A DNA stretch of 64,000 bases from the NCBI GenBank assembly GCA_964247055.1, contig OZ176058.1, positions 2,046,001 to 2,110,000 on the forward strand. The letters run 5' to 3'. The position numbers and the translations under genes are program-made. Below, one piece after another: positions 20,804-64,000 of the stretch (position 1 is its first letter; each line of letters starts with the position of its first letter). The notes under the pieces are model-generated. The model ran no database searches and was not told where the DNA came from. It worked only from the letters and a program-made list of their open reading frames with translations. Source of the stretch: Paragordius varius (Eukaryota; Animalia; Nematomorpha).

Positions 20804-21861
20804 ATTTAATTTGCGATTATATATATATATATATATATATATGAATAAATAAATTATTATTTTATTTTTTCTACACCTAATTTACTTTATATAAAGTCTA
20901 GATTAGATTATCCGTGTCTACATCTGTACACCAAAATAAATTCTAAATATTCACTCTAACAACTGATTATAATTTGGATTTGCATATAGTTTAATATATT
21001 ATGATGAAATTATTTATTAATGGTATTATATTTTATTTAAACGTTTTTAATAAGATAAGGCATATCCAATTTTCTCTGCACAGACGTCCATATTGAAAGC
21101 TAATCTATTATGTGATATACAAATTGTTGCGATTGGGTACTTTGTCATGGTAATATAACTACCTGATCGATATTTTGTTTTTATAAGAAATGAAAGAAAT
21201 CAATAAAATACTTTTATATGGCAGACGCCAAAAGCGAATTGGTAAATAATTTTAAATACTTGGGCGATGTCATACATTGCCTAGGTAGAATAAACCAATC
21301 AGTTAAATATAGATCCTAACAGGCTGGGGTAAAATATCATTAACTTAAATTTATGTTTAAAAATAAACACATATCAGCAAAAAACAAAGGTTTGATTAGA
21401 GTTGTTGATAAGCGACAATAGTTTAAATTAAATGAAACGTTAACGACAAAAAACAATAATTACCGAAGAGACGATAACCCAAATAAAATTTATAAGAATA
21501 TATGGTTAAAATTATTAAAAATATAATTTAGTATAGGAGGGTGCTTTCCTTTGATTTCCCTGTGGCATACGTACTGTTCTAAACAACTGAAATTTTATGG
21601 GTGATTACACTTTAATTAAAAAAGAATTCATTTCTAAGTATCGTAAAACTTCATCAGGGTAATAAGCTTCTTTAGATTGCACTCTTGACAAAGAGGGAAT
21701 CATCCATATCCCTAAGTATATATATATATATATATATATATATAATGTATTTGATGGAATCAAGGTGTGTTCTTCTCTTATCCAAAAGGCAAAAGTTTTT
21801 TCCGATTCAGAATTCAATTACAAATTTATATAAGAATCATTGTCCATTTCATATTATTATA

Positions 21862-23355
21862 CCATTTTTCAGGCAAAAACATCATTTTTTCAAGCAAACG
21901 CAACATTTTTTCAAGCAAAGGCAACAATTTTTCAAGCAAATGCAACATTTTTTCAAGCAAAGACAACATTTTTTCAAGCAAACGCAAAATTTTTTCAAGC
22001 AAACGCAACATTTTTTCAAGCAAACGCAACATTTTTTCAACCAAATACAACATTTTTTCATTCAAACGCAACATTTTTTCAACCAAAGATAACATTTTTT
22101 CAAGCAAAAACAACACTTTTTTTAACATTACAAAGAATTACTATTTATTGTTAATAATTAAATATTTATTAAATTTTAAGTTAATGTAATTTATTTTTAG
22201 CGTTGAATTATGATTTTTATCGTTTTATCATCAATATTTGATGGTAAAATTGATTTTCAAACATTTTGATTTTGCCCATAAATTGCCTTATTTATTTATA
22301 TTAATTATATTTTTCTTTTACAATTTTAGTTTCGCCTATAATCAATTTATATAATTTTCACTTCAAGAGTGTCTTTGTAAGTTTAAAGTTGTCCTTCACT
22401 TTGTTTTTAACTTTTATTAATTAAATCGAAAATAATTTATCTATTTTATTGTTTTTAACCTATTTTTTTATTATTTAACATAAATTTTAAATCGATATCA
22501 ACTTTTAATCTTAGAGAAACCGTATATTAATTAATAATTTTAGATATTTATAACACGAAAAAAATATATGAGTTTTCTGGGTTATTAGAAATTTTTCATT
22601 AAAAACATTAAAAGTTAATAATTTTGTTCAATTAAAAAAAATATTTTGAAATAAAAAAGTGGTTTTTCAAAAAATTTTAAATGGATAAATACATAATAAA
22701 TAAAGAAAATTAGGTTAATAAATAATAATATTAAAAAATAAATGCAAAAATTAGGGTAAAACAAAATTTATAAATTTTAAGACCAACTTAAAGAGTTCAA
22801 GGACCAACTTGAAATGTTCAAGGACCAACTTGAAGTGTTCAAGGACACTCTTGAAGTGCAAATTAAATAAATTGATTATAGGCGAAACTAAAATTGTAAA
22901 AGAAAAATATAATTAATATAAATAAATAGGGCAATTTATGGGCAAAATCAAAATGTTTGAAAATCAATTTTACCATCAAATATTGCTGATAAAACGATAA
23001 AAATCATAATTCAACGCTAAAAATAAATTACATTAACTTAAAATTTAATAAATAATTTATAATTAGCAATAAATAGTAATTCTTTGTAATGTTAAAAAAA
23101 GTGTTGTTTTTGCTTGAAAAAATGTTGTCTTTGGTTGAAAAAATGTTGCGTTTGGATAAAAAAATGTTGTATTTGGTTGAAAAAATGTTGCGTTTGCTTG
23201 AAAAAATGTTGCGTTTGCTTGAAAAAATGTTGCGTTTGCTTGAAAAAATGTTGTCTTTGCTTGAAAAAATGTTGCATTTGCTTGAAAAATTGTTGCCTTT
23301 GCTTGAAAAAATGTTGCGTTTGCTTGAAAAAATGATGTTTTTGCATGAAAAATGG
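21862..23355. mobile_element. Foldback-like element with inverted arrays of a 21-bp repeat
   Basis: TATA|CCATTTTTCA...TGAAAAATGG|TATA. Arms ~21862-22400 and ~22850-23355. Unit TTTTCAAGCAAACGCAACATT, about 11-12 per arm. Confidence 0.85.
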
Positions 23356-29900: not shown

Positions 29901-31013
29901 AATAATCTTAACAATTATTTATGAATATCCATATATATAAGGAATTGACATATAAAGACAATTATTTCTCTTCAAAATATAATTTAAGTTTTTTAGCCTT
30001 TAATTTATCTATTATAAAGGATAATTGCAATCGTAAAATATATGATTGATTGTGTTACCAATATATATATATACCAATTTCATACTTTGCTATTCCAAAC
30101 AATAGTTTGTTCAAAAAATCAAAATACATAAAGTATGGTTGTTTGTCATTAAAAAAAATATTTGACTTTATATTTTTACATTTTGTCCGTATAATTTCAA
30201 TTTTTACTGCAAAATTTTTATTTATCGTTTTTTTAATGTTAGGGTATTTATGTCATAATCAGATTTTATAAATTTAAAAAAAACATAGATTAAAAAGTAA
30301 TATACAGTATGAGTAAGTATATACATTGCTAGAGAGTTATAAATTGTTGCCAAATAGCATAAACAACAAAGGGCAGTATTATTGGCCTATGGTTATTTTT
30401 TTCCATTTTTATCATTAATAGCCAATAATACTTCTCTTTGTTGTATTTACTATTAGGCAATAATTAATAACTTTCCAGCAATGTATACTTTATAAAAAAA
30501 TCTGTGTATACTTTCTTAATTTCTTTAAAACTATATTTTTGTTTATAAGGATTTTATCAATTAACGGCAAATATATTATTTAATATTCAAATTCACCCTT
30601 GAACAATTCAAATTCAACTTGAAAATAAATTATGTGTTTTTGGCTGATATAGCTCATCATTAATATCAATATATTTTTATGGCATATTTTCAGTATGATA
30701 TTAATTTTAAACAAAATTTAAATTTTTTAACAATAAAAAAATATAGGTATTTAATTTTAAAAAAGACATAATTTATTTTAGGGAATTTGAATTGTTTGAG
30801 GGTGAATTTGAACTGTAAATGGTATATCTAAAACTATTAATTTTAAAAAACACAAAATTAAATAAATTTATTTTATTTTTTATAGTATAATATATATATT
30901 AATTGGTAAAACTCAATAATATTTTAGCAATAAATGCGCCATCACTTTCGCCGACTATCACCGGTTACGGTATAATCCAAATCAGCTGTTTTCTTATATT
31001 TTCAAACAATTCT

Positions 31014-31072
31014 TTACAAAAACAGAACAACCAGAATACTTATAAATAGTAGGATTATCACCATCCAATATG
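31014..31072 (-). CDS. STX8: STX8 exon 8 (tail-anchor TM helix and stop)
   Basis: tatatag|CA TAT TGG ATG GTG ATA ATC CTA CTA TTT...TTG TAA. Confidence 0.9.
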
Positions 31073-32868
31073 CTATATATAAAAAATAGAAATTATTTAA
31101 AAATAAATTATATTAAATTTTTTTTTTTAAATTTTATAAAAAAATGAAAATATTGAATAATAACTAAAAATGAAAATAAAAGAATGATTAATTTTGAGGT
31201 GTAATGGTTTTCAAATAGTGTCATTAACTTTTGAAATAATATTATGAATAAATATATAAAATTTTATTTATATTAAATTCAAGAATGCATCAAAGTAAAA
31301 GTTTAATTTTGGATAAAATAAAACATAACAAGAACTTTATTTAAAATAAGGATTGATATTAAAATAAAGATTGAAATATATATTATGTATAAATATATAT
31401 AAAATATTTTTAATATTAATTTTGGAGGTATGCGTTAAATTTTGGATAAAATTAAAAAAAATTAACAAAATATTTAAAATAAGGATTAATATTTTTAAAA
31501 TTTAAGGGTGTTATAAAAAATTGATGTTTAGATTTATATATTAAAAAACACATGTTTTTTCATTCAATAACGCAATATTTTCGTTTGCCGATTTTTAATT
31601 ATTCATAATTTGCTTAAAATATAATATCTACAATTCAAATTCATCCTTGAAAAATTTAAATTTATTCTCAAAAAATTCAAATTAATCCTTGAACAATTCA
31701 AATTCACCCTAAAAATAAATTATGTGTTTTTGGGGTAATATAACTCATCATTAATGATAAAAATATTATTATGGCATAGTTTATTATTTTTTTATTTAAA
31801 TTAAACAAATTTCATTTTTAAAAAGATTAAAAAATATAAAAGTAATTTTTAAATTTAAAAACACATTTTATTTAGGGTGAATTTGAATTGTTCCAGAAGG
31901 GTGAATTTAACTGTAAATGGTATATAGATGGATAGTTTTATATATTATTTTAAAAATTATTGGATATATAAACTTTTTTAAAAATATCAAAAAGTTATGT
32001 TAAATATACCTTATAAAATTGAAAACAGGAATATAAAAAATATTTATTATATATATTTTTAATATTTTTAAAAATTAAGAATCGTCTGCGAACGTTAACC
32101 GTTAGGATAATTTTTTCTGTGCGCAGACGAAAGTTTTATTTAAAATTGTTTTAAAAGTATTTATGTCAGTTAATAGGAATATACGATAAGATTTTGGAAT
32201 ATATCTTAATTCTTGGATAAAAGAGAGGTATTTTTGTAGATTTTTCTATTTTTATCAATTTTTTAATTCTTTGTGCAGACATAAGCTTTGTTTATAATTG
32301 GTGATAAAATTATTATTTAAATACAAGTTGTAGTTGAAATTTTATATATATATAATTCTCGAAATAGAGGGTTATATATTTATCATCCAATTTCAAAAAC
32401 GATGATATTTTATTATTATTTTAATTCTATATTTCATTAAAAAAGCTTGATATGCAATATAATTTTAGGTTAAAATCACATTTATTACCAATCCAATATC
32501 ATATACTTCATATGTTTTTTCCAAGATTAATATTAATTTAAAATAAAAATAATATAAGAAATTATATTTCGAAAAAATTAATTAAAGTGAAAAATTTAAA
32601 ATAAAATATATTTAAGTTTAATATTTTTTTAAAAAATTATATTATTATTATTGTAATTAAAATAACAATTAAAATAAAAATCACAATAGAATAATAAAAT
32701 ATATATAAAATTTTTATATTAATCAATTACTTAGTTAAAAATAATAAAACGGTTTATTAAAAATTAATAAATATCAATTTTTTTATATAACATTAGATCT
32801 TTTCGCTAAATATTTTAACTATAAAATTAAATTATTTTAATAAAAAATTAAATGATAAAATGTATATA

Positions 32869-32908
<40 letters not shown>

Positions 32909-35900
32909 AAATAAAATTAATATTTTTTAAAAATTTATTTCTTCCAAAAAATAAATTAAAATAAATTACGGCAAGTAGACTTGTTTTGTCTCAAGTATTG
33001 TCTCACATTTCGAGTTTGTGCTTCGAGTCTGTGAGTAAGGCCATACATGCCCACACTTATATTATCAATAATTTCTAATTTAAAAATAATTTTTTTTATA
33101 ATTATTAATTTTAGAAAAAAATCAAAAATAGATTTATAAAAATAATAAATTTTAACTTTTATAAAAATATAAAAAATGGTTTAATTTAATATTTAAAAAA
33201 AATTTAAGAATTTCTTATGTATTATCGATAATTTTCAAATTTTATATTTAAAAGTATAAGAAAAAAAATTATATAAAAATAATACGAATTAATGTCATAT
33301 CCACAATTAATTATTAATTTTAATTATCTTCAAAAACATTTTTAATTAGTTTTTTTTTAATTTTATAATAATATTATTTACTACAAAAAAACTAATAAAA
33401 ACTTACAAAAAATAAAAAAAAAATTGAAATATATTAAAATTAGGCATCTTAAAAATAATTCATTAAAAAATATAAATATATTAATAATTCTGATTAAAAA
33501 GATTGAAATTAAAATAATATAGGAAAATTTTAAATATTAATTTAATTTTTTTTATTTTTTTAATTTAAAAAATTATAATTCTTATAATTAAAACCATTTT
33601 GGTTTTGGACTTCACTGTGTATCATTTGCGCAGCATTTTTGTGTTGGCCAATTATATTAACCAGGTGAGATAATTTATTTTCCTGATCTAAAATAATTTA
33701 TTAATAAATAACTATATAAAATAAATAATTAGATTGAAAAAAATTAATTATTAAATTCATTTCTAAATAAAATAAAAATATTTAACATTAAAATTAAAAA
33801 TTATAATTTTTTTTATAATTTATTAAATTAAAAAATATTAGAAAAAAACATTTAAATCAAATTCAAATATAAATCAAGAGTTTTTATAATATTTTTAATT
33901 TAAAAATAATAACATGCATATGGTATCAAAATTTATATTATATTTAAAAATGTTTTTTTTATTTTTTTCGCAAAATTAATAATTAAAAAAAAAATTAGGA
34001 AATATTAAATAATATATTAAAATTAAAAAAAATAATTATTTTAAAATCAAACCTAATTCTATCGTATCCCGTTGTGTTGAACTTAACAGTGCAGTTCTGT
34101 CATCATCAATATTTTCATTATAATCATTTTCATTATAATTATTTTCAATATTTAAATTATTTTTATTATAATTAAAATTATTTTTATTAAAATTATTATT
34201 GTTTTCAAAATCATATGTTTCCAAAGAATTTTTTCTTAACGTTTCTTTATTTTTTTCATGGAAATTTAAATTATTTTTATTATACATATTATTAAAATTA
34301 TTTGAATCAAAAATATTATTTTCAATATCCCAATCTTCGATAGATAGTAGAGATCTAAAATATATAAAATAAAAAAATTAATTATAAATATATATTTATA
34401 AAAAAAAAATTATAATATATATAAAAAGTATTATTTTGAAAATAAATAAAAATTATTAATAAATTTACATTATTTATAAAAACAGAGTTTAACTCTATCT
34501 AATAAAATATTTAAACAAAAATTAATGAAAAGATAAAAAATTTCAATATATAGTCTAAAAATATAATTGACAATTTTTAGACTAAAATATTTTATAGAAC
34601 AAAAATTAATGAATTAAAAATTTCTCAATATTTTAGATTATAGTATTAATAAAGATAAAAAAATTAATAAGTTGACATTATTCTAGACTAAAATATTATA
34701 TAAAAAATTTATAAATTCCCAATAGACTAAAATAAATATATTAGAAAAATAATCAAAAAATTAAAAATTTGTAAATATTTTAAACTAAAAAATAATTAAA
34801 AAATTGAAAATTACTCAATATTTTAAACTTAAATATTTAAAATAATATTTCAAAGTATTATAAATTTAAACCCTAATATATTAGACTAAATATATTAGAA
34901 AATTAAATAAATCAAAAAATTAATAATTTCCTAATATTTTAGACTCAAATATTTTAAAAAATATAAATTTTAAAAAAATAGACTAAAATATATTAAAAAA
35001 TAAAATAATTAAAAAATCAAAAATGAAAATATTTTAGACTAAAATATTTTATTAAACAAAAAATAATTAAAAATTTCCAATATTTTCGACTAAAATATTT
35101 TATTAAAAATAATCAAAAATTAAAAATTCTTAATATTTGAGACTAATATTGAAATTAAAAATTATTAAAAAATTAATCCAATATTTTAGACTAAAATATA
35201 TACAAAATAAATAATTAAAAAATTAATAAATTGAAATGCTTTTCGACTAAAATATAATAAAAAATAAAAATATTTAAAAAATTATTAAGTTGACATTATT
35301 TTAGACTAAAACATGTTAAAAAATAAAAATAACCAAAAAATTAATAAGTTGTCATTATTTTAGACTAAAATATTTTATTAGAGTAAAATAATTAAAAAAT
35401 TAAAAATTTCCAAATATATTTGAGTAAAATAAATATATTAAAAAAATAAAAAATTGTCCAATCTTTATTTTATCTATCATAATAAATGATAAAAACGATA
35501 ATATTATCGATTTTTTACAGCCTTTTTTTACACATGTAAAACCATTAAAAAATAAATTAGTTTTTTATTGAATGTTGTTTGTTTTCAAGGTTATATTAGG
35601 ATTCCAAAAAAATATATTTTTAAATTTCAGAAAAAAAATTCAGTTTCTTGGTCTTAATAAAATCCATTTAAAAAATCTAAAAATATATACCATTTACAGT
35701 TCAAATTAACCCTTAAACAATTCAAATCCACCTATGAACAATTTAAATTCACCCTTAAACAATTCAAATTTACCTTCGATCAATTCAAATTCACCCTAAA
35801 ATAAATTATGTGTTTTTTAATATTAAATTATACCTATATTTTTCATTTTTTTTACTGGTATCTCAAAATAAAACTGAAAAAATAATAACATTGCCATAAA

Positions 35901-36834
35901 AATATATTTTTTATAATGAGTTATAATGAACCGAAATTTCATAATTTATTTTTAGGGTGAATTTGATTTGTTCAAGGGTGAATTTGAATTGTTTGAGGGT
36001 GAATTTGAATTTTCAAAAGTGAATTTGAATTGTTCAAGGGTGAATTTAATTTGTTCAAGGATTTTGAAAAAATGGTATATAATGTTTTTGAATATTTATA
36101 AATGTAATGGTTTAAATTTAAGATAAAAACAATGTGTGGGCCCCTCTCAACAAAATAATTAAAAATTTAAAAAATATTTTTTGTTACAAAAAAAACTAAG
36201 GACATTATTTTAGAAATTTAGTGGCTATTTATTTCGATTCAATGTTATTACATTAACTATAAAACAAAGGTTTTATAACTGAGAAATTATACGGACAAAA
36301 CGTAAAAATATAAAGACAAGTATTTTTTTCTATTATTATGTTTCACTAAAACTCATTGTTTTAAATGAAGTGTAAATAGAGTAGATACTATATTACTAAG
36401 ACAATCAATTCTATATAATCTTACAATTGTAACTAAATAGTTTATATGAGAAAAAAATAAGGTTTGAGAAGAATGTTTGTTTAAGATATTTGTCTTTAAA
36501 TTTTTGCGTTTTATCCGTAGTATAATTTCAATTTTTACTGTATTTTAAATATTATCAACATAATTAATAACCATAAATCAAACCTAAAATCATATCTACA
36601 AATTCAAAAATTATTTTTTCAGGTAAAAAAAATTATAAAAAAAGTCAAGGAGCAGCAAGTGAAACCAAAAAGTCACGTGCACATGATTCAAGTGGGCGAC
36701 ATATATTCAAATAAATATAAATATATATAGTTAAAATCCATATTATGAATTTTTATATTTATCAATTGGAAATTTTCAAGAAATAACTTTTAAAACATAT
36801 AATTAGTAAAAATATATATTTATAAAATATATAA

Positions 36835-36865
<31 letters not shown>

Positions 36866-37835
36866 CTAGATCTTACAATTTAAATTCCCTTTTAAACAAT
36901 AATTCACCCTTAAACAATAATTCAAATTCACCCTCAAATAAATTATATGTTTTTTAAGATTAAATATTACATATATTTTTATATGTTTTCAAAATATGAA
37001 ATTTGGTCAAAATTTATAATAAAACTGAAAAAATAATAACCTATGCCATAAGAATATACATCATATTAATGATAAAATATATTAGTTCGAAAACACATAA
37101 TTTATTTTTAGGATGAATTTGAATTGTTCAAGGGTAAATTTGAACTGTAAATGGTTAATTTTAATAAATTATATGAAATATATATATATATATATCTATT
37201 AAAATTATATTAAAAAAACTAAAAATTATATACCCCTTAATACTTTTTTGACTAGTATGATAAGGTGAATAATTTGAGTTTTCATCGTTTGAAGCATTTG
37301 TTAAATTTGTTGTATGACTGGGAGAATTAAAATTATTTTTATCAAGTTTATTTTCAAAATTAATTTTATTTTCAAAATTTTGAAAATTAATTAAATTATT
37401 TTCATTATTAATATCTAAAAGTAATGTTTGATTATTGGTTTGATTTTTTTGTTCAAATGTGAACAATTCTGATTTATAAAGGCTATCCATAAAATTGTGT
37501 TTATTCAACAGGTTATTTATATGGTTGGTGCGTTGATTAAATTCATGATTTGTTCTGCAAATGGTTAAAAAATAAAAAAATAAAAAATATAAAAATATTT
37601 AAAAAAAATAAATTAAATATTACGTATATAAAAGATTATTATTGAAAATTATAAATAATTATTTTTAATATACTAAAAATTTAAAATAGCAATCAAAAAT
37701 TATTCCAAATTTTCAGCATTATGCCTTTATTTATCACCATTAAACTTCTCTTAAAATATAAATTTTTTTACAAAATTTATAAATTAAAACTTTTGAAGAT
37801 ACAGATATAAATATAACAAAAAAACATTTTTATAA

Positions 37836-37881
<46 letters not shown>

Positions 37882-39477
37882 ATATATAAATAATTGGCAA
37901 CTTAAATAAATAATGATATACCATTTACAGCTCTAATTCACCCTTAAACAATTGAACAATTCAAATTCACCCTCGAACAATTCAAATTCACCCTTGAACA
38001 ATTCAAATTCACCCTAAAAATAAATTATGTGTTTTCGAACTAATTTAACTCATAATTAATGAGTAATATATCTTTATGGCATAGTTTATTATTTTTTCAG
38101 TATTATTTAAATTTAAAACAAAATTTTTATTTTTTGAAAATATAAAAAAATATTGGGTAATTTTTAATCTAAAAACATATGTTTTATTTGAGGGTTAATT
38201 TGAATTGTTTAAGGGTGAATTTGAATTGTTCAAGGGTGAATTTGAATTGTTTAAGGGTGAATTTGAATTGTAAATGGTATATATATTCACCAATAATTTC
38301 CATTGCTTGGCCTTTTTAATTTTCATTATTAGAAAAAAAATTTCAAAAGGTAAAAATGAAAAGATTGGGATTAGTTATATAAAATAAAATTTTTATAGAA
38401 ATTAGGAATCCTAAATATTCAATAGCCAAAAAATTAACAATTAAAAATTAAAAAAGATTAAAAAAAATATATTAAGATTATTTTACATTTTTCCACATCT
38501 TAGATCGGAGCTGGCCTGAATTTTAAGATGTTTAATATCAGTGGCAAATTGCTGTAAATTAATCCGTATTTTTGAATAAATCTAAAAAATTAATTAGTTG
38601 TATTAAAAAAATGAATATAAAAGAAATTGCAATTATATGGACAAAAGATAAAAATATAAGGACAAATATTTTTTTTAAATCATACTTTTAAAATTCATTT
38701 AATTAATTAAATAATTTTTTTGGAGGAAAATTAAGGTTTAAAAAATGGTTGTATTTTAAAAAAAATATTTATCCTAATATGTTTACGTTTTATCCGTAAA
38801 ATTTCATTTTTAATATATATCGTAGAAATAACTAAAATTAAGGTGTTAATCTTTTAAAGGGCCGTCAACAATTTAAAAAGAAATTGTTTTTTAAAGTTAA
38901 ACAAACTTTAATAAATAAAAAAAATATATATAAACCAAAATTTTGAAAATATGAATGAATAAATTTGTTAAAAACCTAAAATTAAAAAAACTTAAAATAT
39001 TATAATAAAAGCATTGCACTGAAAAAGATCCTAAAAATACATATTCTAAATCAATCAATTATCAATTTCTGAAGTCACATTAATTAGTCGATGAATTCTA
39101 ATATTTTGAAAAACTAAATTTTTAAAAACTATATAATTCCAGTATAAATTTGCACGAGTTATATTCATACATATTATTAAAGACTGCAAAATTATAGTTT
39201 TTTGAATTGATGTGAAGATTAAAAATGGATTTAAAACAAAATAATTTTTTGTTAAAAAATAAAATTATACTTTATTTAAGTCATTAATATCCTGTGAATT
39301 AGACGAAACTAAGGTTTTTGATTGCCTTGAAGCATCTTGAATTAAACCAAGAAGCAATTGAGATCTCTCAGATAACTTGTCGTAATTCGTGGACCTGAAA
39401 TATTTTAAAACATAAAAATTATTTTAAAGAAAATATAAAATAGATAAAATATACCATTTGTCTTTAACCAATGCCAT
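31014..39477 (-). CDS. STX8: Syntaxin-8-like Qc-SNARE, 8 coding exons, 373 aa
   Basis: complement(join(31014..31072,32970..33074,33595..33687,34053..34354,37234..37554,38487..38581,39271..39394,39455..39477)) = 1122 nt, no internal stop, all introns GT-AG with matching phases. N-terminus MALVKDKWSTNYDKLSERSQLLLGLIQD. SNARE motif DQENKLSHLVNIIGQHKNAAQMIHSEVQNQNEIIDNISVGMYGLTHRLEAQTRNVRQY resembles human EQDAGLDALSSIISRQKQMGQEIGNELDEQNEIIDDL. C-terminal TM STCPYWMVIILLFISILVVLFL*. Confidence 0.92.
31625..31920. mobile_element. 21-bp-repeat MITE in STX8 intron 7
   Basis: GAACAATTCAAATTCACCC arrays inverted. Ends ...AACTGTAAATGG|TATA. Confidence 0.75.
32970..33074 (-). CDS. STX8: STX8 exon 7 (C-terminal half of SNARE motif)
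   Basis: 105 nt, phase 1-1: (E)IIDNISVGMYGLTHRLEAQTRNVRQYLRQNKSTC(P). Confidence 0.92.
33595..33687 (-). CDS. STX8: STX8 exon 6 (N-terminal half of SNARE motif including the 0-layer Gln)
   Basis: 93 nt, phase 1-1: (D)QENKLSHLVNIIGQHKNAAQMIHSEVQNQN(E). Confidence 0.92.
34053..34354 (-). CDS. STX8: STX8 exon 5 (Asn-rich linker)
   Basis: 302 nt, phase 2-1: SLLSIEDWDIENN...DDDRTALLSSTQRDTIEL. Contains track ORF 34036-34287. Confidence 0.85.
34480..35450. repeat. Degenerate AT-rich minisatellite (~55-65 bp unit) in STX8 intron 4
   Basis: TTTTAGACTAAAATAT core recurs about 15 times. Confidence 0.75.
35690..36075. mobile_element. 21-bp-repeat MITE in STX8 intron 4
   Basis: TATA|CCATTTACAGTTCAAATT...AAAAATGG|TATA. 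A second copy lies at ~36870-37154. Confidence 0.8.
37234..37554 (-). CDS. STX8: STX8 exon 4 (Hc helix plus Asn-rich extension)
   Basis: 321 nt, phase 2-2: TNHEFNQRTNHINNLLNKHNFMDSLYKSE...SQKSIK(G). Confidence 0.85.
37921..38277. mobile_element. 21-bp-repeat MITE (cleanest copy, 357 bp) in STX8 intron 3
   Basis: TATA|CCATTTACAGCTC...TTGTAAATGG|TATA. Arms of GAACAATTCAAATTCACCCTT. Another copy at 49427-49687. Confidence 0.85.
38487..38581 (-). CDS. STX8: STX8 exon 3
   Basis: 95 nt, phase 0-2: IYSKIRINLQQFATDIKHLKIQASSDLRCGK(I). Confidence 0.85.
39271..39394 (-). CDS. STX8: STX8 exon 2
   Basis: 124 nt, phase 2-0: (W)STNYDKLSERSQLLLGLIQDASRQSKTLVSSNSQDINDLNK. Confidence 0.85.
39455..39477 (-). 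CDS. STX8: STX8 exon 1 (start)
   Basis: ATG GCA TTG GTT AAA GAC AAA TG|gtatat followed by a 60-nt intron. MALV..W start resembles insect Syx8. Confidence 0.8.
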
Positions 39478-58500: not shown

Positions 58501-59899
58501 GGAAGTGATGATTCAAATGAACAAGTAAAATTTTATATTTTGCAAGTGTGTTTGAGTTTAACATATTTGCATTATTTATTTCAGTTTGTTTTTAAAAATA
58601 AATAGTATTTGAATTTTTGTTGCGAAAAAAACTACACATTATTCAAATAATAGGAGGTTTCATAAAAACACTATATGTTTTATCATGCAACAAGTTTTTG
58701 GGGCGATTGTTGAAACTTGAAGGGACTATCCAATTAATATCATCTATAAATTATTACATATTAATTATTTAAATGAAATAAAAATTATAAATAAAGATAA
58801 AAAGCACTACAGTAAAATTGAAATTATAAGGACACAAAAAGTAAAAATAAAAAGATTAATATTACTATTTTTTCAAAGAACAAGCTGATATTACATCATA
58901 TCATTCTAAAACATACTGATTCAGCCTAATACATAAATCAATACCTTTTTATACCAGGTTTTTATATATTATTTAATCAAAGTGTGAAATAGACACATAA
59001 TTACTTATACAATCAATTCTATATTTACAATTGTAATTAAAAAGCTTATTTGGAAATAATTCATAAAAGTATGGTTATCTTTTAGATAAAATATTTGTTA
59101 TATTTTTACGTTCAATTTTTACTGTGGAAGACAAATATTTTTTAAAAATGACTGTCCTACTTTTTGATTAAAGAGATTCAGATATAAATTGGTAACTCAC
59201 CTAATGATTTAAATTTTAATCATAGGTGATGCATTTGAAGGGTTAAAAAATGTGATCTTTTAGAAAAAAATATTTGTCTTTATATTTATACACTTTGTCT
59301 CTATAATTTCAATTTTATTGTACTTTGTAAAACCAAATATATTTTATTTTTCCTAGAGGTATAGAACTCTTAAAATTATATACTTTATTACTATTTGGGG
59401 TAATTTTTTACCGCACAATGATTTAATATTCGAATATCTTAAAATGTCTTAAGATATTAGGCCTAATTTAAAGTTACGGATTTTTTAGCCATTTAAACGG
59501 ATGATTTACAAGTAAAAACCGAAATTATATTATGGACAAAACGTAAAAATCAAAAGACAAATATTTTTTTTCAAAAGACAACCAAACTTTTTAATACTTT
59601 AATTTTTGCTATATAAAGTAGGTAATTACAATAGTAAACTACTTACTTGATTGCGCTTGCACTTTAAAACAATCAGTCATATAAAAAAAATCAAGATTCA
59701 AATATATGGTTGTCTTATAGAAAATAACATTTATCTTTATATTTTTACGTTTTGTCCGTATAATTTAAGTTTTTTTTGTAAAGATATATTTTATAAAAAA
59801 TGTAAATTTTTATACATTTCTAACATGTTGGCGGCCATTTTTTTTGAATTTTATCTAAGCCGCTAATCCAAAGGTAAATAAATGTATATAGTCAGAATA

Positions 59900-62881
59900 C
59901 ACTAGTCAACAAGGTTTTGCACCACCCCATATTTTTGTATTTTCAGATACCTAATATGATGGAAAGGCCAAAACAAAAAAAAATTTTGAGGCCACCAATA
60001 GGAATTTTCCAAAATTTAATTTTCAAATTTGTATTTAATTTAAAAAAAAACAATCATTCCTCGTGTACATATGTTTAAATATTCAAACGAGCAAGTCGAT
60101 ACAAGTAATATTCCAGAGCCAGGTATTTTCATTATAATTTTAGTACGAAAATGCAAAAATGATCCAAATAAATTTTGCATCTGTTGTGGTAAATATATAT
60201 TTAAGAACAATAACTCGCGGAATATTGATGTTATTACTGGAAAACTTTTTACAAAATATTTTGATACCAAAATTGATAATGACAGAGCATGGGCCCCCCA
60301 AAAAATATGCGACGCATGCCGAATCCTTTTGCACGGTTGGAAGAATCATAAAAATATAATGCCATTTTCCGTACCCATGATATGGCGTATCCCATCAAAT
60401 CATGATCAAGGTTCCCATAACATATATTTTAGAGTGCTATTTTTGTCTTTTTGATCATTTCAAAGCTTTTCGAGCAAAGCGATATAAAAAACCAATTGTT
60501 TACCCCGATGTACCTACCGCTATCAAACCAGTACCAAATGATCCAAATATACCAGCCCCAATATACGATGCCACAGATGATATTTTTATTGACGAAGACT
60601 CTACAGAAAATGTTATTGATGATCCATTAAATAAAACTTTATCTGAAAATGCCGTTGATCTTTATATTAAAAAATATAAACTGCCTAAAAATGCTGCTGA
60701 AGGGTTATTATCTCTTTTGCATGAGACAAACGTTATATCAAGCGGGAACGTTACTCGACATAGAAATAGACAATCGAAAATTTCTAAATTTTTTACGGAA
60801 CTTGATAAAATTATCCACTGCAATGATATAAAAGGATTAATGGAGGAGCTTAATACTTCCTACAATCCTGAAGATTGGGCTCTTTTCGTGGATAGCAATA
60901 TGGTTTTACTCTTATATATAATATTTAAAAGCTGAGTTTGAAGATGATATTACTCCATAAAACTAATGCCAAGAAACCAGTGGTTATTGTATATGGCCGA
61001 AAATGTAAAGAATCTTACCAAGTTTTTAAAGATACACTGGAAAAAATATCTTACAAAACTCATGGTTGGAATGTTGTGGGTGATTTTAAAGTAAAATCCG
61101 TGATATATTTTAGGTTTTATTAATGCTGGCAGGTCTTCAGGGTGGATTCCCTAAATACCACTGCTTGTTCTGTCTATGGAATAGCAGAATGAGGCACCAG
61201 CATTATGTAAAGAAGGGCTGGGGTGCTCGAAGTTATCTGATTGGAAATTTCAATCAAATTTTGGAGCCCCTTATAAATATTGAAAAAATATACATCCCTC
61301 CTCTGCATATATTGCTGGGAATTTTTTCAATATTTATAAAGAATCTTGAAAAAGATTCGGAGTCTTTTATTTATTTTCACAACCATTATAATCTCAGCAA
61401 AGCCAAAGATGAGGCTGGGGTTGCTAATGGCCCATTAATCAAAAATTTTTTTGAAGATAAATCTTTTTTAAACTTATTATCTATAAAAGAAAAAAAGGCT
61501 TTTGAAGCTTTAAAAAAATTCAACAGTGGTTTTTTAGGTATAATATATTTTTAAATATTAGGTTCACATAAGTCAGAAAATTATAAAATATTAGCTCAGG
61601 AGCTTGTAGAGAGTTTTCATCGGATGGGTATATTATTTCATAAAATGTAGGCTGTAATATGACCATGAAGCTACACGTAATACATGAACATATCGAAAAA
61701 TTCCCGCTCAATAACATTAGCGATCAAGTAGGCGAGCGTATGCATCAAGATATAAAAAGATTTGAAGCCAGATACAAGGCCCGAAATAATATTAACATGA
61801 TATCTGATTTTATTTGGAATTTTAATGCTATATAATTATTATTTTAATTACATACAATAAATAAATATTCATTTTATTTGATATATTATTAAAAATTTAT
61901 AGTTAAAAAGAAAATTTATATATAGATAATAATTTTAATATCTATTTATACAATTTTTTGTAAAGTACCTATATCCGAATAAATGGATATATAGTAATCA
62001 ACACAAAATTTGTACAAAAAATTTATTTGCATGAATAACAAAAGTCTAGGCATTAAATAAGATACTAAACAAGCTAAGAGCCATAGAATTAAAAATCTAA
62101 AAGGGCTTATGTATAGAGCTTTGCATATCCCCAAGCGATCCTATAATTATGCCACATATGGCAAAGATAACAATAAGTAAAATTGACATGTCAAATTACC
62201 AATTCACAGAATAAAGTTTGATAAATTCTACAATTAAATCGAATAAATAGATTAGGTAAATACAAATGGTCCAATTCCATCACAGTAAATTCTACTAAAA
62301 GTGGCTACACAACATCCATCTGAAATTCAAAAATAAAACAACCAATAAATTTAAAAAATACAGTATATCCCCTAGGAAAAAATAAAGGATTTTTTGTAAG
62401 AATCAACTCAAAAGTAAAGCCTAATAACTACTCGAAAGAACGAAAAATAACAAAAAAAATATAGCCTATCTAAAAGCCGAAGGTTTAAACCATGGAATGC
62501 CTTTTTTAGTATTTTTTTAAAAATTTTTTATACGTATTAAAAATTCACTTGAAGGAAAAAGGCGGAATTTTGGCGTTTAAGTCCGTACTATTTTTTTCTC
62601 TCTGATATTTAAATGACATATTTATATTCAAAAGATAGAGTTTAAAACGCTTTATTAAATGATATTAAGTTTATAATATAATAACATTTTATTATAAAGT
62701 TATTTTCGATTTTCTCTCGATTTTCTCTTGTTTTTGAAAAATTGAAAAACCTATAATATTTCAAAATCCTGATTGGCGGGATCAAAAAATTTTTCAGATT
62801 CGGTTTTAGAACACTGAAATCAGTCATAATTTAAAATTTTGAGTGGTGGTGCTCGAAAATGTCCAAATTTGTCGACTAGTG
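59900..62881 (+). mobile_element. Chapaev3-like (CMC group) DNA transposon, apparently full-length and autonomous
   Basis: ATA|CACTAGTCAACAA...TTGTCGACTAGTG|ATA (12/13-bp TIR match, 3-bp TSD). Subterminal GCACCACC at both ends. Encodes a complete transposase. Confidence 0.88.
60071..61835 (+). CDS. Chapaev3-type DDE transposase, 540 aa, 7 exons with six 21-29-nt introns
   Basis: join(60071..60122,60144..60410,60433..60902,60932..61090,61114..61537,61562..61627,61651..61835) = 1623 nt, open throughout. N-terminal Cys-rich CKNDPNKFCICCG...WAPQKICDAC...NHDQECYFC. Core WALFVDSNMLSLKMILLH, WNVVGDFKVLLMLAGLQGGFPKYHCLFCLWNSR, PPLHILLG, FLGSHK, MGCNMTMKLH, SDQVGERMHQDI. Confidence 0.88.
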
Positions 62882-63056
62882 ATATGTAAATAACTAACTT
62901 AAGAGAGATTTAAACTACATAGTATCAGCAAATTATTGATGTTTGAATATTTTAAGATCAGATGTTTATAATAATCGGTTTTTGCTTTCCAAATTTTAGA
63001 CTCTATTAAAAAACTTTAAAAATATAGTTTTTTATCTAATTCAGGAGAACAATGCT

Positions 63057-63058
<2 letters not shown>

Positions 63059-63098
<40 letters not shown>
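63059..63098. repeat. (TA)n microsatellite, exemplar
   Basis: Other (TA)n runs near 20818, 21718, 32860, 36845, 37840 and 51812. Confidence 0.9.
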
Positions 63099-63102
<4 letters not shown>

Positions 63103-64000
63103 TCAAAACTTAAATCAATTTGAAATTAAGCTTGGGTAAAAATTAACCCAAAGTGGAATAGCCTACAAAAAGGGTAATAAATTCATAAAAAAAATTTAGA
63201 AAATATTTAAAAAATATCAAAACTCGGCGGTTTTAAAATTATTTTGAAGGAAATTACTTATAACGGATGCCGGTTTACATGAAATTTCCACACCCCCAAA
63301 AAAATGTGTTAGCACAAGAATAATAAATAGACAATTCAATTTCATAGTTTTAAGCACCATACTTTAGAATAATTTTAAAGTTTTTTAATTTTTTTAAACT
63401 AAAAAAGCAAAAAAAAAATAAATATTTGACAAAAACTGTGTCACATCTATAACAATGCGGACGGCAGGCTAGGTTATATTGCTTTTTTTATAACCAAAAA
63501 ATGTGCAGTAAAAATGAAATTATACGGACAAAATGTACAAATATAAAGACCTTATAAATGTAAATTTTTTAAAAATAACTCATTTTTTAAATATTAAACT
63601 CTAAGATAGAGCTATTAAGACTAACACAATCAATTTTTTATTTTACAATTCTAACTAAATAGCTTATATAAGAAAAATTAAGGTTTTAAAAAGTATGGGG
63701 TTGTCTTTTGGAAAAAAATATTTGTCTTTCGTTTTATCCGTATAATTTCAATTTTCACTGTAATAAATGAACATTTGACGAGCATTTTAAATCTGAACAA
63801 AAACAAAATTGAGTTTTAACTTTGGACAATATAATAATTAAGTTACTTATTAGTAAATGGCTTCGCGGGCCGCATTTTAAATACATGGTATTCAATTTCA
63901 TTAGATTCCAAACATATTGACTATAAAATGCACAATACAATACAATAATTTTTTTCTAGTTCGTTAACACACCAGTTAAATAGACGACTACAGAAAATTT

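Follow-up and report, generated by a model that had tools for sequence, protein, structure and literature searches.

Can a transposase gene whose reading frame breaks again and again still encode a complete enzyme? The question is raised by an element at positions 59900-62881 of a 64,000-nucleotide (nt) stretch of the genome of the hairworm Paragordius varius (contig OZ176058.1; this whole stretch is called the window below). The element spans 2,982 bp and carries one gene, which appears broken to open reading frame (ORF) finders because six segments of 21-29 nt interrupt its frame. We consider it likely that the locus is a complete, autonomous transposon of the Chapaev3 type, a group of cut-and-paste elements that are distant cousins of the RAG1 antibody-gene recombinase. 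Its RAG1/Transib-like DDE transposase of 540 amino acids (aa) would then be split by spliceosomal GT-AG introns 21-29 nt long, at least five and probably six of them, which were most probably gained in the host lineage.

Six short segments and the frame restored without them

An earlier note on this DNA had proposed that six GT...AG segments hide an intact transposase, and the segments were reproduced exactly, each GT...AG, at the coordinates listed below. Their excision (142 nt in all) joins seven exons into a coding sequence of 1,623 nt, from the ATG at 60071 to 61835, encoding 540 aa followed by TAA, and no further frameshift or stop occurs across it. The junction motifs named in that note (NHDQ/ECYFC, DSNM/LSLK, GDFK/VLL, FLG/SHK and RMG/CNM, the slash marking the junction) were all found, and they align with conserved blocks of related proteins. 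The parts of the element, all on the forward (+) strand, are as follows.

59897-59899, +: left copy of the target-site duplication, ATA, with A before it; the same ATA stands at 62882-62884
59900-59912, +: left terminal inverted repeat (TIR), CACTAGTCAACAA; identical at 12 of 13 nt to the right end taken in reverse complement; read depth increases here
59913-60070, +: 5' non-coding region between the TIR and the first ATG of the frame, putative promoter and 5' untranslated region; belongs to the high-copy part
59919, +: subterminal GCACCACC, a motif about 20-30 nt inside each end
60071-60122, +: exon 1, ATG, 17 codons plus 1 nt, unconserved N-terminus
60123-60143, +: micro-intron 1, 21 nt, GT..AG, phase 1
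60144-60410, +: exon 2, N-terminal Cys-rich (Chapa-like) zinc-finger region; weak zf-AD and weak RAG1 N-terminal similarity
60411-60432, +: micro-intron 2, 22 nt, phase 1, within the DH../DCYFC block; retention gives a stop
60433-60902, +: exon 3, variable linker, then the first RNase-H strand with candidate D260 (FVDSNM)
60903-60931, +: micro-intron 3, 29 nt, phase 0
60932-61090, +: exon 4, SLK..LLH block to the GDFK block with candidate D314
61091-61113, +: micro-intron 4, 23 nt, phase 0
61114-61537, +: exon 5, GLQGG..C333xxC336, L380-H381, helical insertion domain; 1,286 homologues
61538-61561, +: micro-intron 5, 24 nt, phase 1, with an in-frame TAA, within the NFLG/N block
61562-61627, +: exon 6, 66 nt
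61628-61650, +: micro-intron 6, 23 nt, phase 1, within the ..MG/C.MS block
61651-61835, +: exon 7, H488x4H493, candidate E508 (GERMHQ), TAA at 61833-61835
61856-61861, +: AATAAA, candidate polyadenylation signal 21 nt past the stop, suggested by the sequence
61862-62868, +: 3' non-coding region; from about 62040 it is shared with a very high-copy deletion derivative, as seen in depth and joints
62845, +: subterminal GGTGGTGC, inside the right end
62869-62881, +: right TIR, ..TTGTCGACTAGTG; depth is 0 beyond it, and diverse loose ends start at 62881
62882-62884, +: right copy of the target-site duplication, ATA, with T after it

Reading through introns 2, 3, 4 or 6 shifts the frame and reaches a stop in 10-17 codons, and intron 5 holds an in-frame TAA. 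Since each of these, if kept, gives a premature stop, the host spliceosome must excise introns 2-6 for a full-length protein to be made. Intron 1 is a multiple of three in length (21 nt) and free of stops, and could be read through, as the earlier note had allowed. The composition of the segments is also what might be expected of introns: GC content is 17.6% in the segments vs 33% in the exons, TTTTAG ends three of the six, at least three Ts stand in the last 9 nt before the AG in five, and a G lies directly 5' of the donor in five of the six-intron set. To judge from the letters of the locus, five and probably all six of the segments would be spliced out.

As a check on chance, we ran a dynamic-programming chain search over both strands of the window, in which any GT-N(18-32)-AG jump was allowed. 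It found 605 stop-free codons at this locus vs 184 for the next best chain anywhere in the window, and on its own recovered five of the six segments. No host gene with micro-introns stands out in the window in this search, and the longest other ORFs there are without a convincing Pfam match.

These results bear on the simplest alternative, a decayed pseudogene in which random insertions chance to be bounded by GT and AG and nothing is spliced. Most DNA transposon copies of any family are dead, and no RNA showing splicing at this locus was found in the runs searched, both of which would suit a pseudogene. However, with G at about 0.12 and T at about 0.38, the chance that a random insertion is GT...AG-bounded is only about 0.2%, and for six in succession it is below 1e-12. 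Nor would random insertions explain an otherwise clean frame of 1,623 nt, an alignment to relatives that is gap-free exactly at the junctions, the low GC content and T-rich ends of the segments, the extreme position of the locus in the chain search, or the keeping of segment lengths in divergent sibling copies. We regard a pseudogene as very improbable.

Conserved protein blocks span five of the junctions

We aligned the spliced product with 15 full-length database relatives, and separately with 12 uninterrupted ORFs from metagenomic DNA. In both alignments (27 full-length relatives, 30-40% identity) junctions 2-6 are gap-free, and each lies inside a conserved block: DH../DCYFC, FIDSS../SLKAVLLH, GDFK/V..L.GLQ, NFLG/N.RS.NY and ..MG/C.MSLK.H. 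Introns 3 and 4 fall close to candidate catalytic residues, three codons after D260 and two codons after D314. Along aa 18-537 the product runs colinear with full-length relatives, which are 504-618 aa long, and tblastn gave single high-scoring segment pairs spanning the same residues.

The proposal of micro-introns thus held for introns 2-6 in both sets of relatives, while homology gives no test of intron 1. Introns 2-6 are supported as real micro-introns, as far as sequence comparison can speak. The claim of an intact transposase fared well too: besides the colinearity, D260, D314 and E508 and the C(2)C, LH and H(4)H motifs are all kept. Given a host able to splice introns of this size, the transposase gene is very probably intact.

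A Chapaev3 transposase with a RAG1/Transib-like fold

Zhang et al. (2014, PMC4079192) defined Chapaev and Chapaev3 elements as those that end in CAC...GTG, duplicate a 3-bp TWA target lying between A and T, and encode a DDE transposase that contains the motifs C(2)C, LH and H(4)H. In the window protein, C(2)C is C333-x2-C336, LH is L380-H381 and H(4)H is H488-x4-H493, all in the same blocks as in relatives. D260, D314 and E508 stand in the conserved D, D and E columns (FIDxS, DxKV and GERFHQ in the consensus of alignments A1 and A2).

Domain databases were of little help in finding this family. Pfam and NCBIfam models gave no family match for the exon pieces, only weak zf-AD matches, and no Pfam family model matched any of ten full-length relatives; the two largest ORFs of the window had no exact record in the public gene index. 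In contrast, when the exon-5 piece was searched exhaustively with HMMER, 1,286 homologues were found, the full-length ones being 504-618 aa. In homologues of about 540-560 aa, the exon-5 region lies at residues of about 310-460, the same place as in the spliced product.

A structure was modelled with AlphaFold for a relative, P0020 (39% identical), from a 34-row alignment (A1) that includes the window exon pieces, with a predicted local distance difference test (pLDDT) score of 92. In this model the aligned D, D and E positions lie on a strand (250-256), a second strand (305-308) and a late helix (504-519). Its best structure matches are the RAG1 core, HzTransib (the Helicoverpa Transib transposase) and BbRAGL (the amphioxus RAG-like protein), over about 540 columns, with probability 1.0, E about 1e-7 and a template-modelling (TM) score of about 0.45. 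By this model D260, D314 and E508 would form a DDE catalytic triad on an RNase-H-like core, and we treat them as candidate catalytic residues.

The N-terminus carries a conserved Cys/His pattern, a candidate Chapa-like zinc finger. The family profile there (A1, positions 32-105) resembles the RAG1 N-terminal chain (E = 0.11) and the Drosophila ZAD domain (E = 0.005), both weakly, and a sequence search of PDB with the family profile gave marginal matches only. In agreement with the modelled fold, Kapitonov and Koonin (2015, PMC4411706) placed Chapaev3 in the Transib superfamily, with an N-terminal 'Chapa' zinc-finger domain shared with RAG1; our N-terminal matches point the same way but are too weak to be counted.

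The Chapaev3 identity proposed in the earlier note is borne out by the CAC...GTG ends, the 3-bp duplication, the motifs, the similarity between the TIR of relatives (CACTGGTCAACAA) and that of the window element (CACTAGTCAACAA), and the RAG1/Transib-like fold. Membership of the element in Chapaev3 is thus supported.

A large family that keeps the segments in its DNA

To see the element outside the window, we aligned the Logan contigs of four runs, two with the window's species label and two with other labels, to 59800-63000; all four behave as DNA. The termini of the element (59907-60120 and 62047-62900) are about 100-fold deeper in these reads than the coding core. Deletion joints from 60115 to 62028 and from 60115 to 62041 mark internally deleted derivatives of about 1 kb. 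Past 62881 the depth is zero, and many different flank sequences begin there, with the consensus TAAT (TAA plus T, the published target pattern). Aligned pieces range from below 90% to above 99% identity, 268 of 1,845 being at least 99% identical in run X1, and blastn found no second copy of the element within the window. The element belongs to a large family in which an autonomous core is accompanied by numerous non-autonomous derivatives. An intact gene, both ends, a target-site duplication and near-identical copies together indicate that this copy is autonomous and was probably active recently, and it may be active still.

Comparison with other genomic copies, a check that the earlier note had suggested, is partly addressed by these contigs: the segments are kept at introns 2, 4, 5 and 6. 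Contigs of copies that are 86-99.5% identical cross these four introns with 0-3 gap letters, including in the runs with other labels. Intron 2 is crossed without gap letters, introns 4 and 6 are crossed in runs X2 and X6, and intron 5 in runs X1 and X5, with one sibling variant missing 3 nt inside intron 5. None of the 40 variant positions listed falls on a splice-site base; a further 258 variant positions lie beyond these. Since contigs cross the introns in this way and no joint the size of a micro-intron is listed, the sibling copies keep the segments at the DNA level.

This is relevant to the idea that the segments are removed from DNA rather than RNA, as internal eliminated sequences (IESs) like those of ciliates or by programmed elimination. 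Their size of 21-29 nt and their AT-richness do recall the short class of Paramecium IESs. But the boundaries are GT and AG, with a short T run before five of the latter, and not TA and TA; the joined form is absent among the joints listed for the four runs, where many contigs keep the segments; and the exons are stop-free in the standard genetic code, which argues against a ciliate with reassigned stops. Elimination from DNA is hardly credible here.

Of the 31-mers of the element, 11-33% occur in runs X5-X8, whose labels name four other organisms (B-E), and contigs from B and C include pieces more than 99% identical that cross micro-introns. Such pieces could reflect close relatives, carry-over of parasite DNA or horizontal transfer.

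Intronless relatives: gain or loss?

To follow the introns through the family, we turned to relatives that can be read at the DNA level. A metagenome scan with a nine-row alignment (A2) returned 80 loci, with 537 candidate stretches that encoded a relative. Uninterrupted ORFs of 519-585 aa were present in 12 of the 80, and eight of these 12 have inverted ends like the window's, of the form CACTG[GT]NCAACAA. In seven of those eight, the 3-bp flanks consist of T and A only (mostly TTA or TAA). Because of these inverted ends and flanks, we take these eight loci to be genomic elements and not transcripts. The contig of relative P0149 (locus L081), among the rows nearest to the window protein on our tree, is likewise genomic, with an uninterrupted ORF of 510 aa and CAC..GTG ends. 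In total, 13 relatives are readable as DNA; all are uninterrupted across all six positions, and nine have inverted ends. Three further relatives (P0010, P0020 and P0034) were called as continuous ORFs of exactly protein length. In the literature, most Chapaev3 transposases are single-exon, while those of Merrow and Garfield have two exons (PMC4079192). Gain in the host lineage is the more parsimonious direction because the ORFs of the relatives are uninterrupted and Chapaev3 genes mostly have a single exon. On parsimony and this published statement on single exons, the micro-introns are most probably lineage-specific gains, so that gain rather than loss seems the direction of change.

The introns might instead be real but ancestral, ordinary-sized introns of an older Chapaev3 lineage that shrank to 21-29 nt here and were lost in the sampled relatives. 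The two-exon transposases of Merrow and Garfield are consistent with this, as is the position of the window protein, which does not fall inside the clade of relatives verified as intronless in DNA. All 13 relatives readable as DNA are nevertheless uninterrupted at all six positions, every other full-length database relative checked is one continuous ORF, and the published transposases are mostly single-exon. We find an ancestral origin unlikely, though less so than a pseudogene.

Several observations weigh against our preferred reading, an autonomous element with introns gained in the host lineage. In a quick maximum-likelihood tree that is poorly resolved (15 of 29 inner branches open), the window protein has the longest end branch and stands outside the well-supported, DNA-verified intronless clade, and the tree does not settle where its lineage branches off. 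Junction 1 lies in a 17-residue unconserved N-terminal extension that is absent from relatives and that homology cannot judge; intron 1 stays unproven because this N-terminus is unconserved and the segment is in frame and without a stop. No protein more than 51% identical (over a fragment) occurs in a representative library of 1.84 billion, and no annotated or transcript-derived product was found. The structural model is that of a 39%-identical relative and not of the window's own protein. The duplication of the window copy is ATA and not the published TWA, though it is 3 bp long and lies between A and T. No micro-intron-sized joint occurs among the joints listed for the four DNA-like runs. 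Finally, RNA-labelled runs with the same species label contain none of the locus, although their assemblies are so tiny (1-30 million letters) that this absence is uninformative.

We also looked for traces of how the introns arose. Tandem duplication was rejected as a source: similarity to the flanking 40 nt is not above that of shuffles, with one of 12 comparisons marginal (p = 0.046). With a length of 21-29 nt, the segments leave no room for an element and are therefore not transposon-derived introners.

The metagenomic relatives deserve a description of their own. Loci L001-L011, L024 and L081, from soil, gut and other metagenomes, are complete Chapaev3-like elements of 2.3-4.6 kb with intact single-exon ORFs, TIRs of the form CACTG[GT]NCAACAA and mostly TTA or TAA flanks. 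Their presumed source is DNA of invertebrates in the samples.

How the element would be expressed

On the reading we prefer, transcription would start in the 171-nt left end region, and the AATAAA found 21 nt after the stop would serve as polyadenylation signal. The host spliceosome would then remove the micro-introns to give an mRNA for an enzyme with all family motifs. The 540-aa enzyme would bind the CAC...GTG ends of full-length and deleted copies alike, and would move both the element itself and the roughly 100-fold commoner derivatives of about 1 kb that keep only both ends, making 3-bp duplications. Since nonsense surveillance could detect the retention of five of the six introns, the efficiency of splicing could limit the supply of transposase.

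A stronger form of this last idea is that real introns are spliced inefficiently, or in certain tissues only, and act as a throttle on the transposase, with most transcripts carrying premature stops and being degraded. The germline-restricted third intron of the P element is an analogue. The pattern of premature stops on retention, in five of the six introns, is the one tied to nonsense-mediated surveillance in Paramecium (PMC3464196), and very short introns of Microsporidia are reportedly spliced at an efficiency of about 25% (PMC13644364). The locus is also missing from the RNA-labelled runs of the species, as a throttle would predict, but assemblies of that size make the absence uninformative. 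Such a throttle is a possibility we hold tentatively; it is compatible with the explanation we prefer and does not exclude it.

Comparison with known systems

The window element shares with published Chapaev3 families (Merrow, Garfield, Conan and the Chapaev3 elements of Repbase; PMC4079192) its CAC...GTG ends and a 3-bp duplication between A and T. Further shared features are one gene, for a transposase of about 540-560 aa that carries a DDE triad and the motifs C(2)C, LH and H(4)H, an element size of 2.3-3 kb, and abundant deletion derivatives. It differs in having seven exons separated by introns of 21-29 nt, whereas published families have one exon (two in Merrow and Garfield), and in its duplication (ATA at the window copy vs TWA). 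The nearest relatives found are 35-43% identical to the window protein. As a member of Chapaev3 the element is new, and so is its gene structure: this animal DNA transposon carries many ultra-short introns, and its relatives carry none.

With RAG1, Transib and ProtoRAG (BbRAGL) the family shares a predicted fold that matches their cores over nearly the whole length, and the element ends start with CAC like the heptamer of the recombination signal of the RAG1 system. Sequence identity is only 9-14% and TM about 0.45, however; the window element has no RAG2-like partner gene, and its duplication is 3 bp.

Transposase expression that depends on introns is long known from the P element, Ac and CACTA elements. 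In the P element, Ac/hAT and CACTA En/Spm, as would be the case here, the transposase depends on host splicing. The number of introns varies among families within a superfamily (PMC4158355). Their introns are of ordinary size (50 nt to kilobases) vs 21-29 nt at the window element, and the trend in plant CACTA elements is intron loss (PMC4158355), whereas gain is likelier here.

The closest parallels in intron size come from elsewhere. Animal introns below 30 nt have been published only for dicyemids and myxobolid myxozoans (Hadjez et al. 2026, PMC13644364), where, as at our locus, conserved exon junctions led to the inference of GT-AG introns of 20-30 nt in the genome of an animal. Those introns lie in host genes of compact, transposon-poor genomes in which nearly all introns are short, unlike the present ones, which lie in a mobile element of a repeat-rich genome with 24% GC. 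Neither Nematomorpha nor transposon genes are mentioned in that paper (PMC13644364). Published hairworm genomes have about 27% GC and 64% repeats, mostly DNA transposons, values that the 24% GC and repeat richness of the window fit; two papers on hairworm genomes make no use of the word intron.

The earlier note knew of no report of introns this small in an animal DNA transposon, and the literature we found agrees, although Paramecium Tc1/mariner elements do have predicted transposase introns (PMC3464196). These elements, Sardine, Thon and Anchois (Arnaiz et al. 2012, PMC3464196), resemble ours in having transposase ORFs with predicted introns in a host whose introns average about 25 nt, and hence in being mobile elements that depend on the tiny-intron splicing of the host. 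They differ in belonging to a ciliate and to another superfamily, in having one or a few predicted introns at most, and in being eliminated from the somatic genome.

Surroundings in the window

A dispersed repeat unit of 45-80 nt, with a core of about GTCTTTATATTT..TAC..TTTGTC..TATAATTTCAATTTT, occurs in at least six copies on both sides of the Chapaev3 element:

58808-58851, 59256-59326, 59531-59612, 59679-59773, 63500-63550 and 63699-63760, both orientations: copies of the dispersed repeat

The left flank of the element (59800-59906) is itself high-copy in reads. Because of this flank and the dispersed repeats on both sides, the insertion of the element seems to have occurred within a different repeat family. 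Just beyond the element, at 63055-63100, is a (TA)n microsatellite of about 45 nt.

Farther away, positions 30001-38000 have a GC content of 14-19%, vs a window mean of 24%, and show weak blastn similarity to the AT-rich 3' part of the element that looks to be low complexity only. At 21685-22189, overlapping ORFs of 100-140 aa occur in several frames on both strands, one of them with a sub-threshold match to the beta-roll repeat family LbR_Ice_bind (26 bits, cut-off 30); this is probably a simple or tandem repeat and not a gene.

Significance

Standard gene-model tools, with a minimum intron of 30-40 nt or more, and ORF tools would count both this element and its family among the dead, and for this genome the resulting repeat landscapes and numbers of potentially active elements would be wrong.

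With intronless relatives, the ancestral number of introns was probably zero, and each micro-intron would then be a datable gain whose mechanism may be traced across copies and subfamilies. We see roughly even chances that a family that is single-exon in its other sampled hosts gained five to six introns of less than 30 nt in this animal lineage, and with it that micro-introns may be created at a high rate in any transcribed gene. If the introns were indeed gained, multi-copy families that can be dated by divergence would offer both a clock and a natural experiment for the origin and rate of micro-introns.

Gain of these introns would also have consequences for the element itself, as its transposase would be usable only where the host splices introns below 30 nt. 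Intact members are of comparative interest because the family is structurally related to RAG1/Transib. Horizontal transfer is known for Chapaev3 (PMC4079192), and the need for such unusual host splicing would restrict the function of a genomic copy after it had been transferred.

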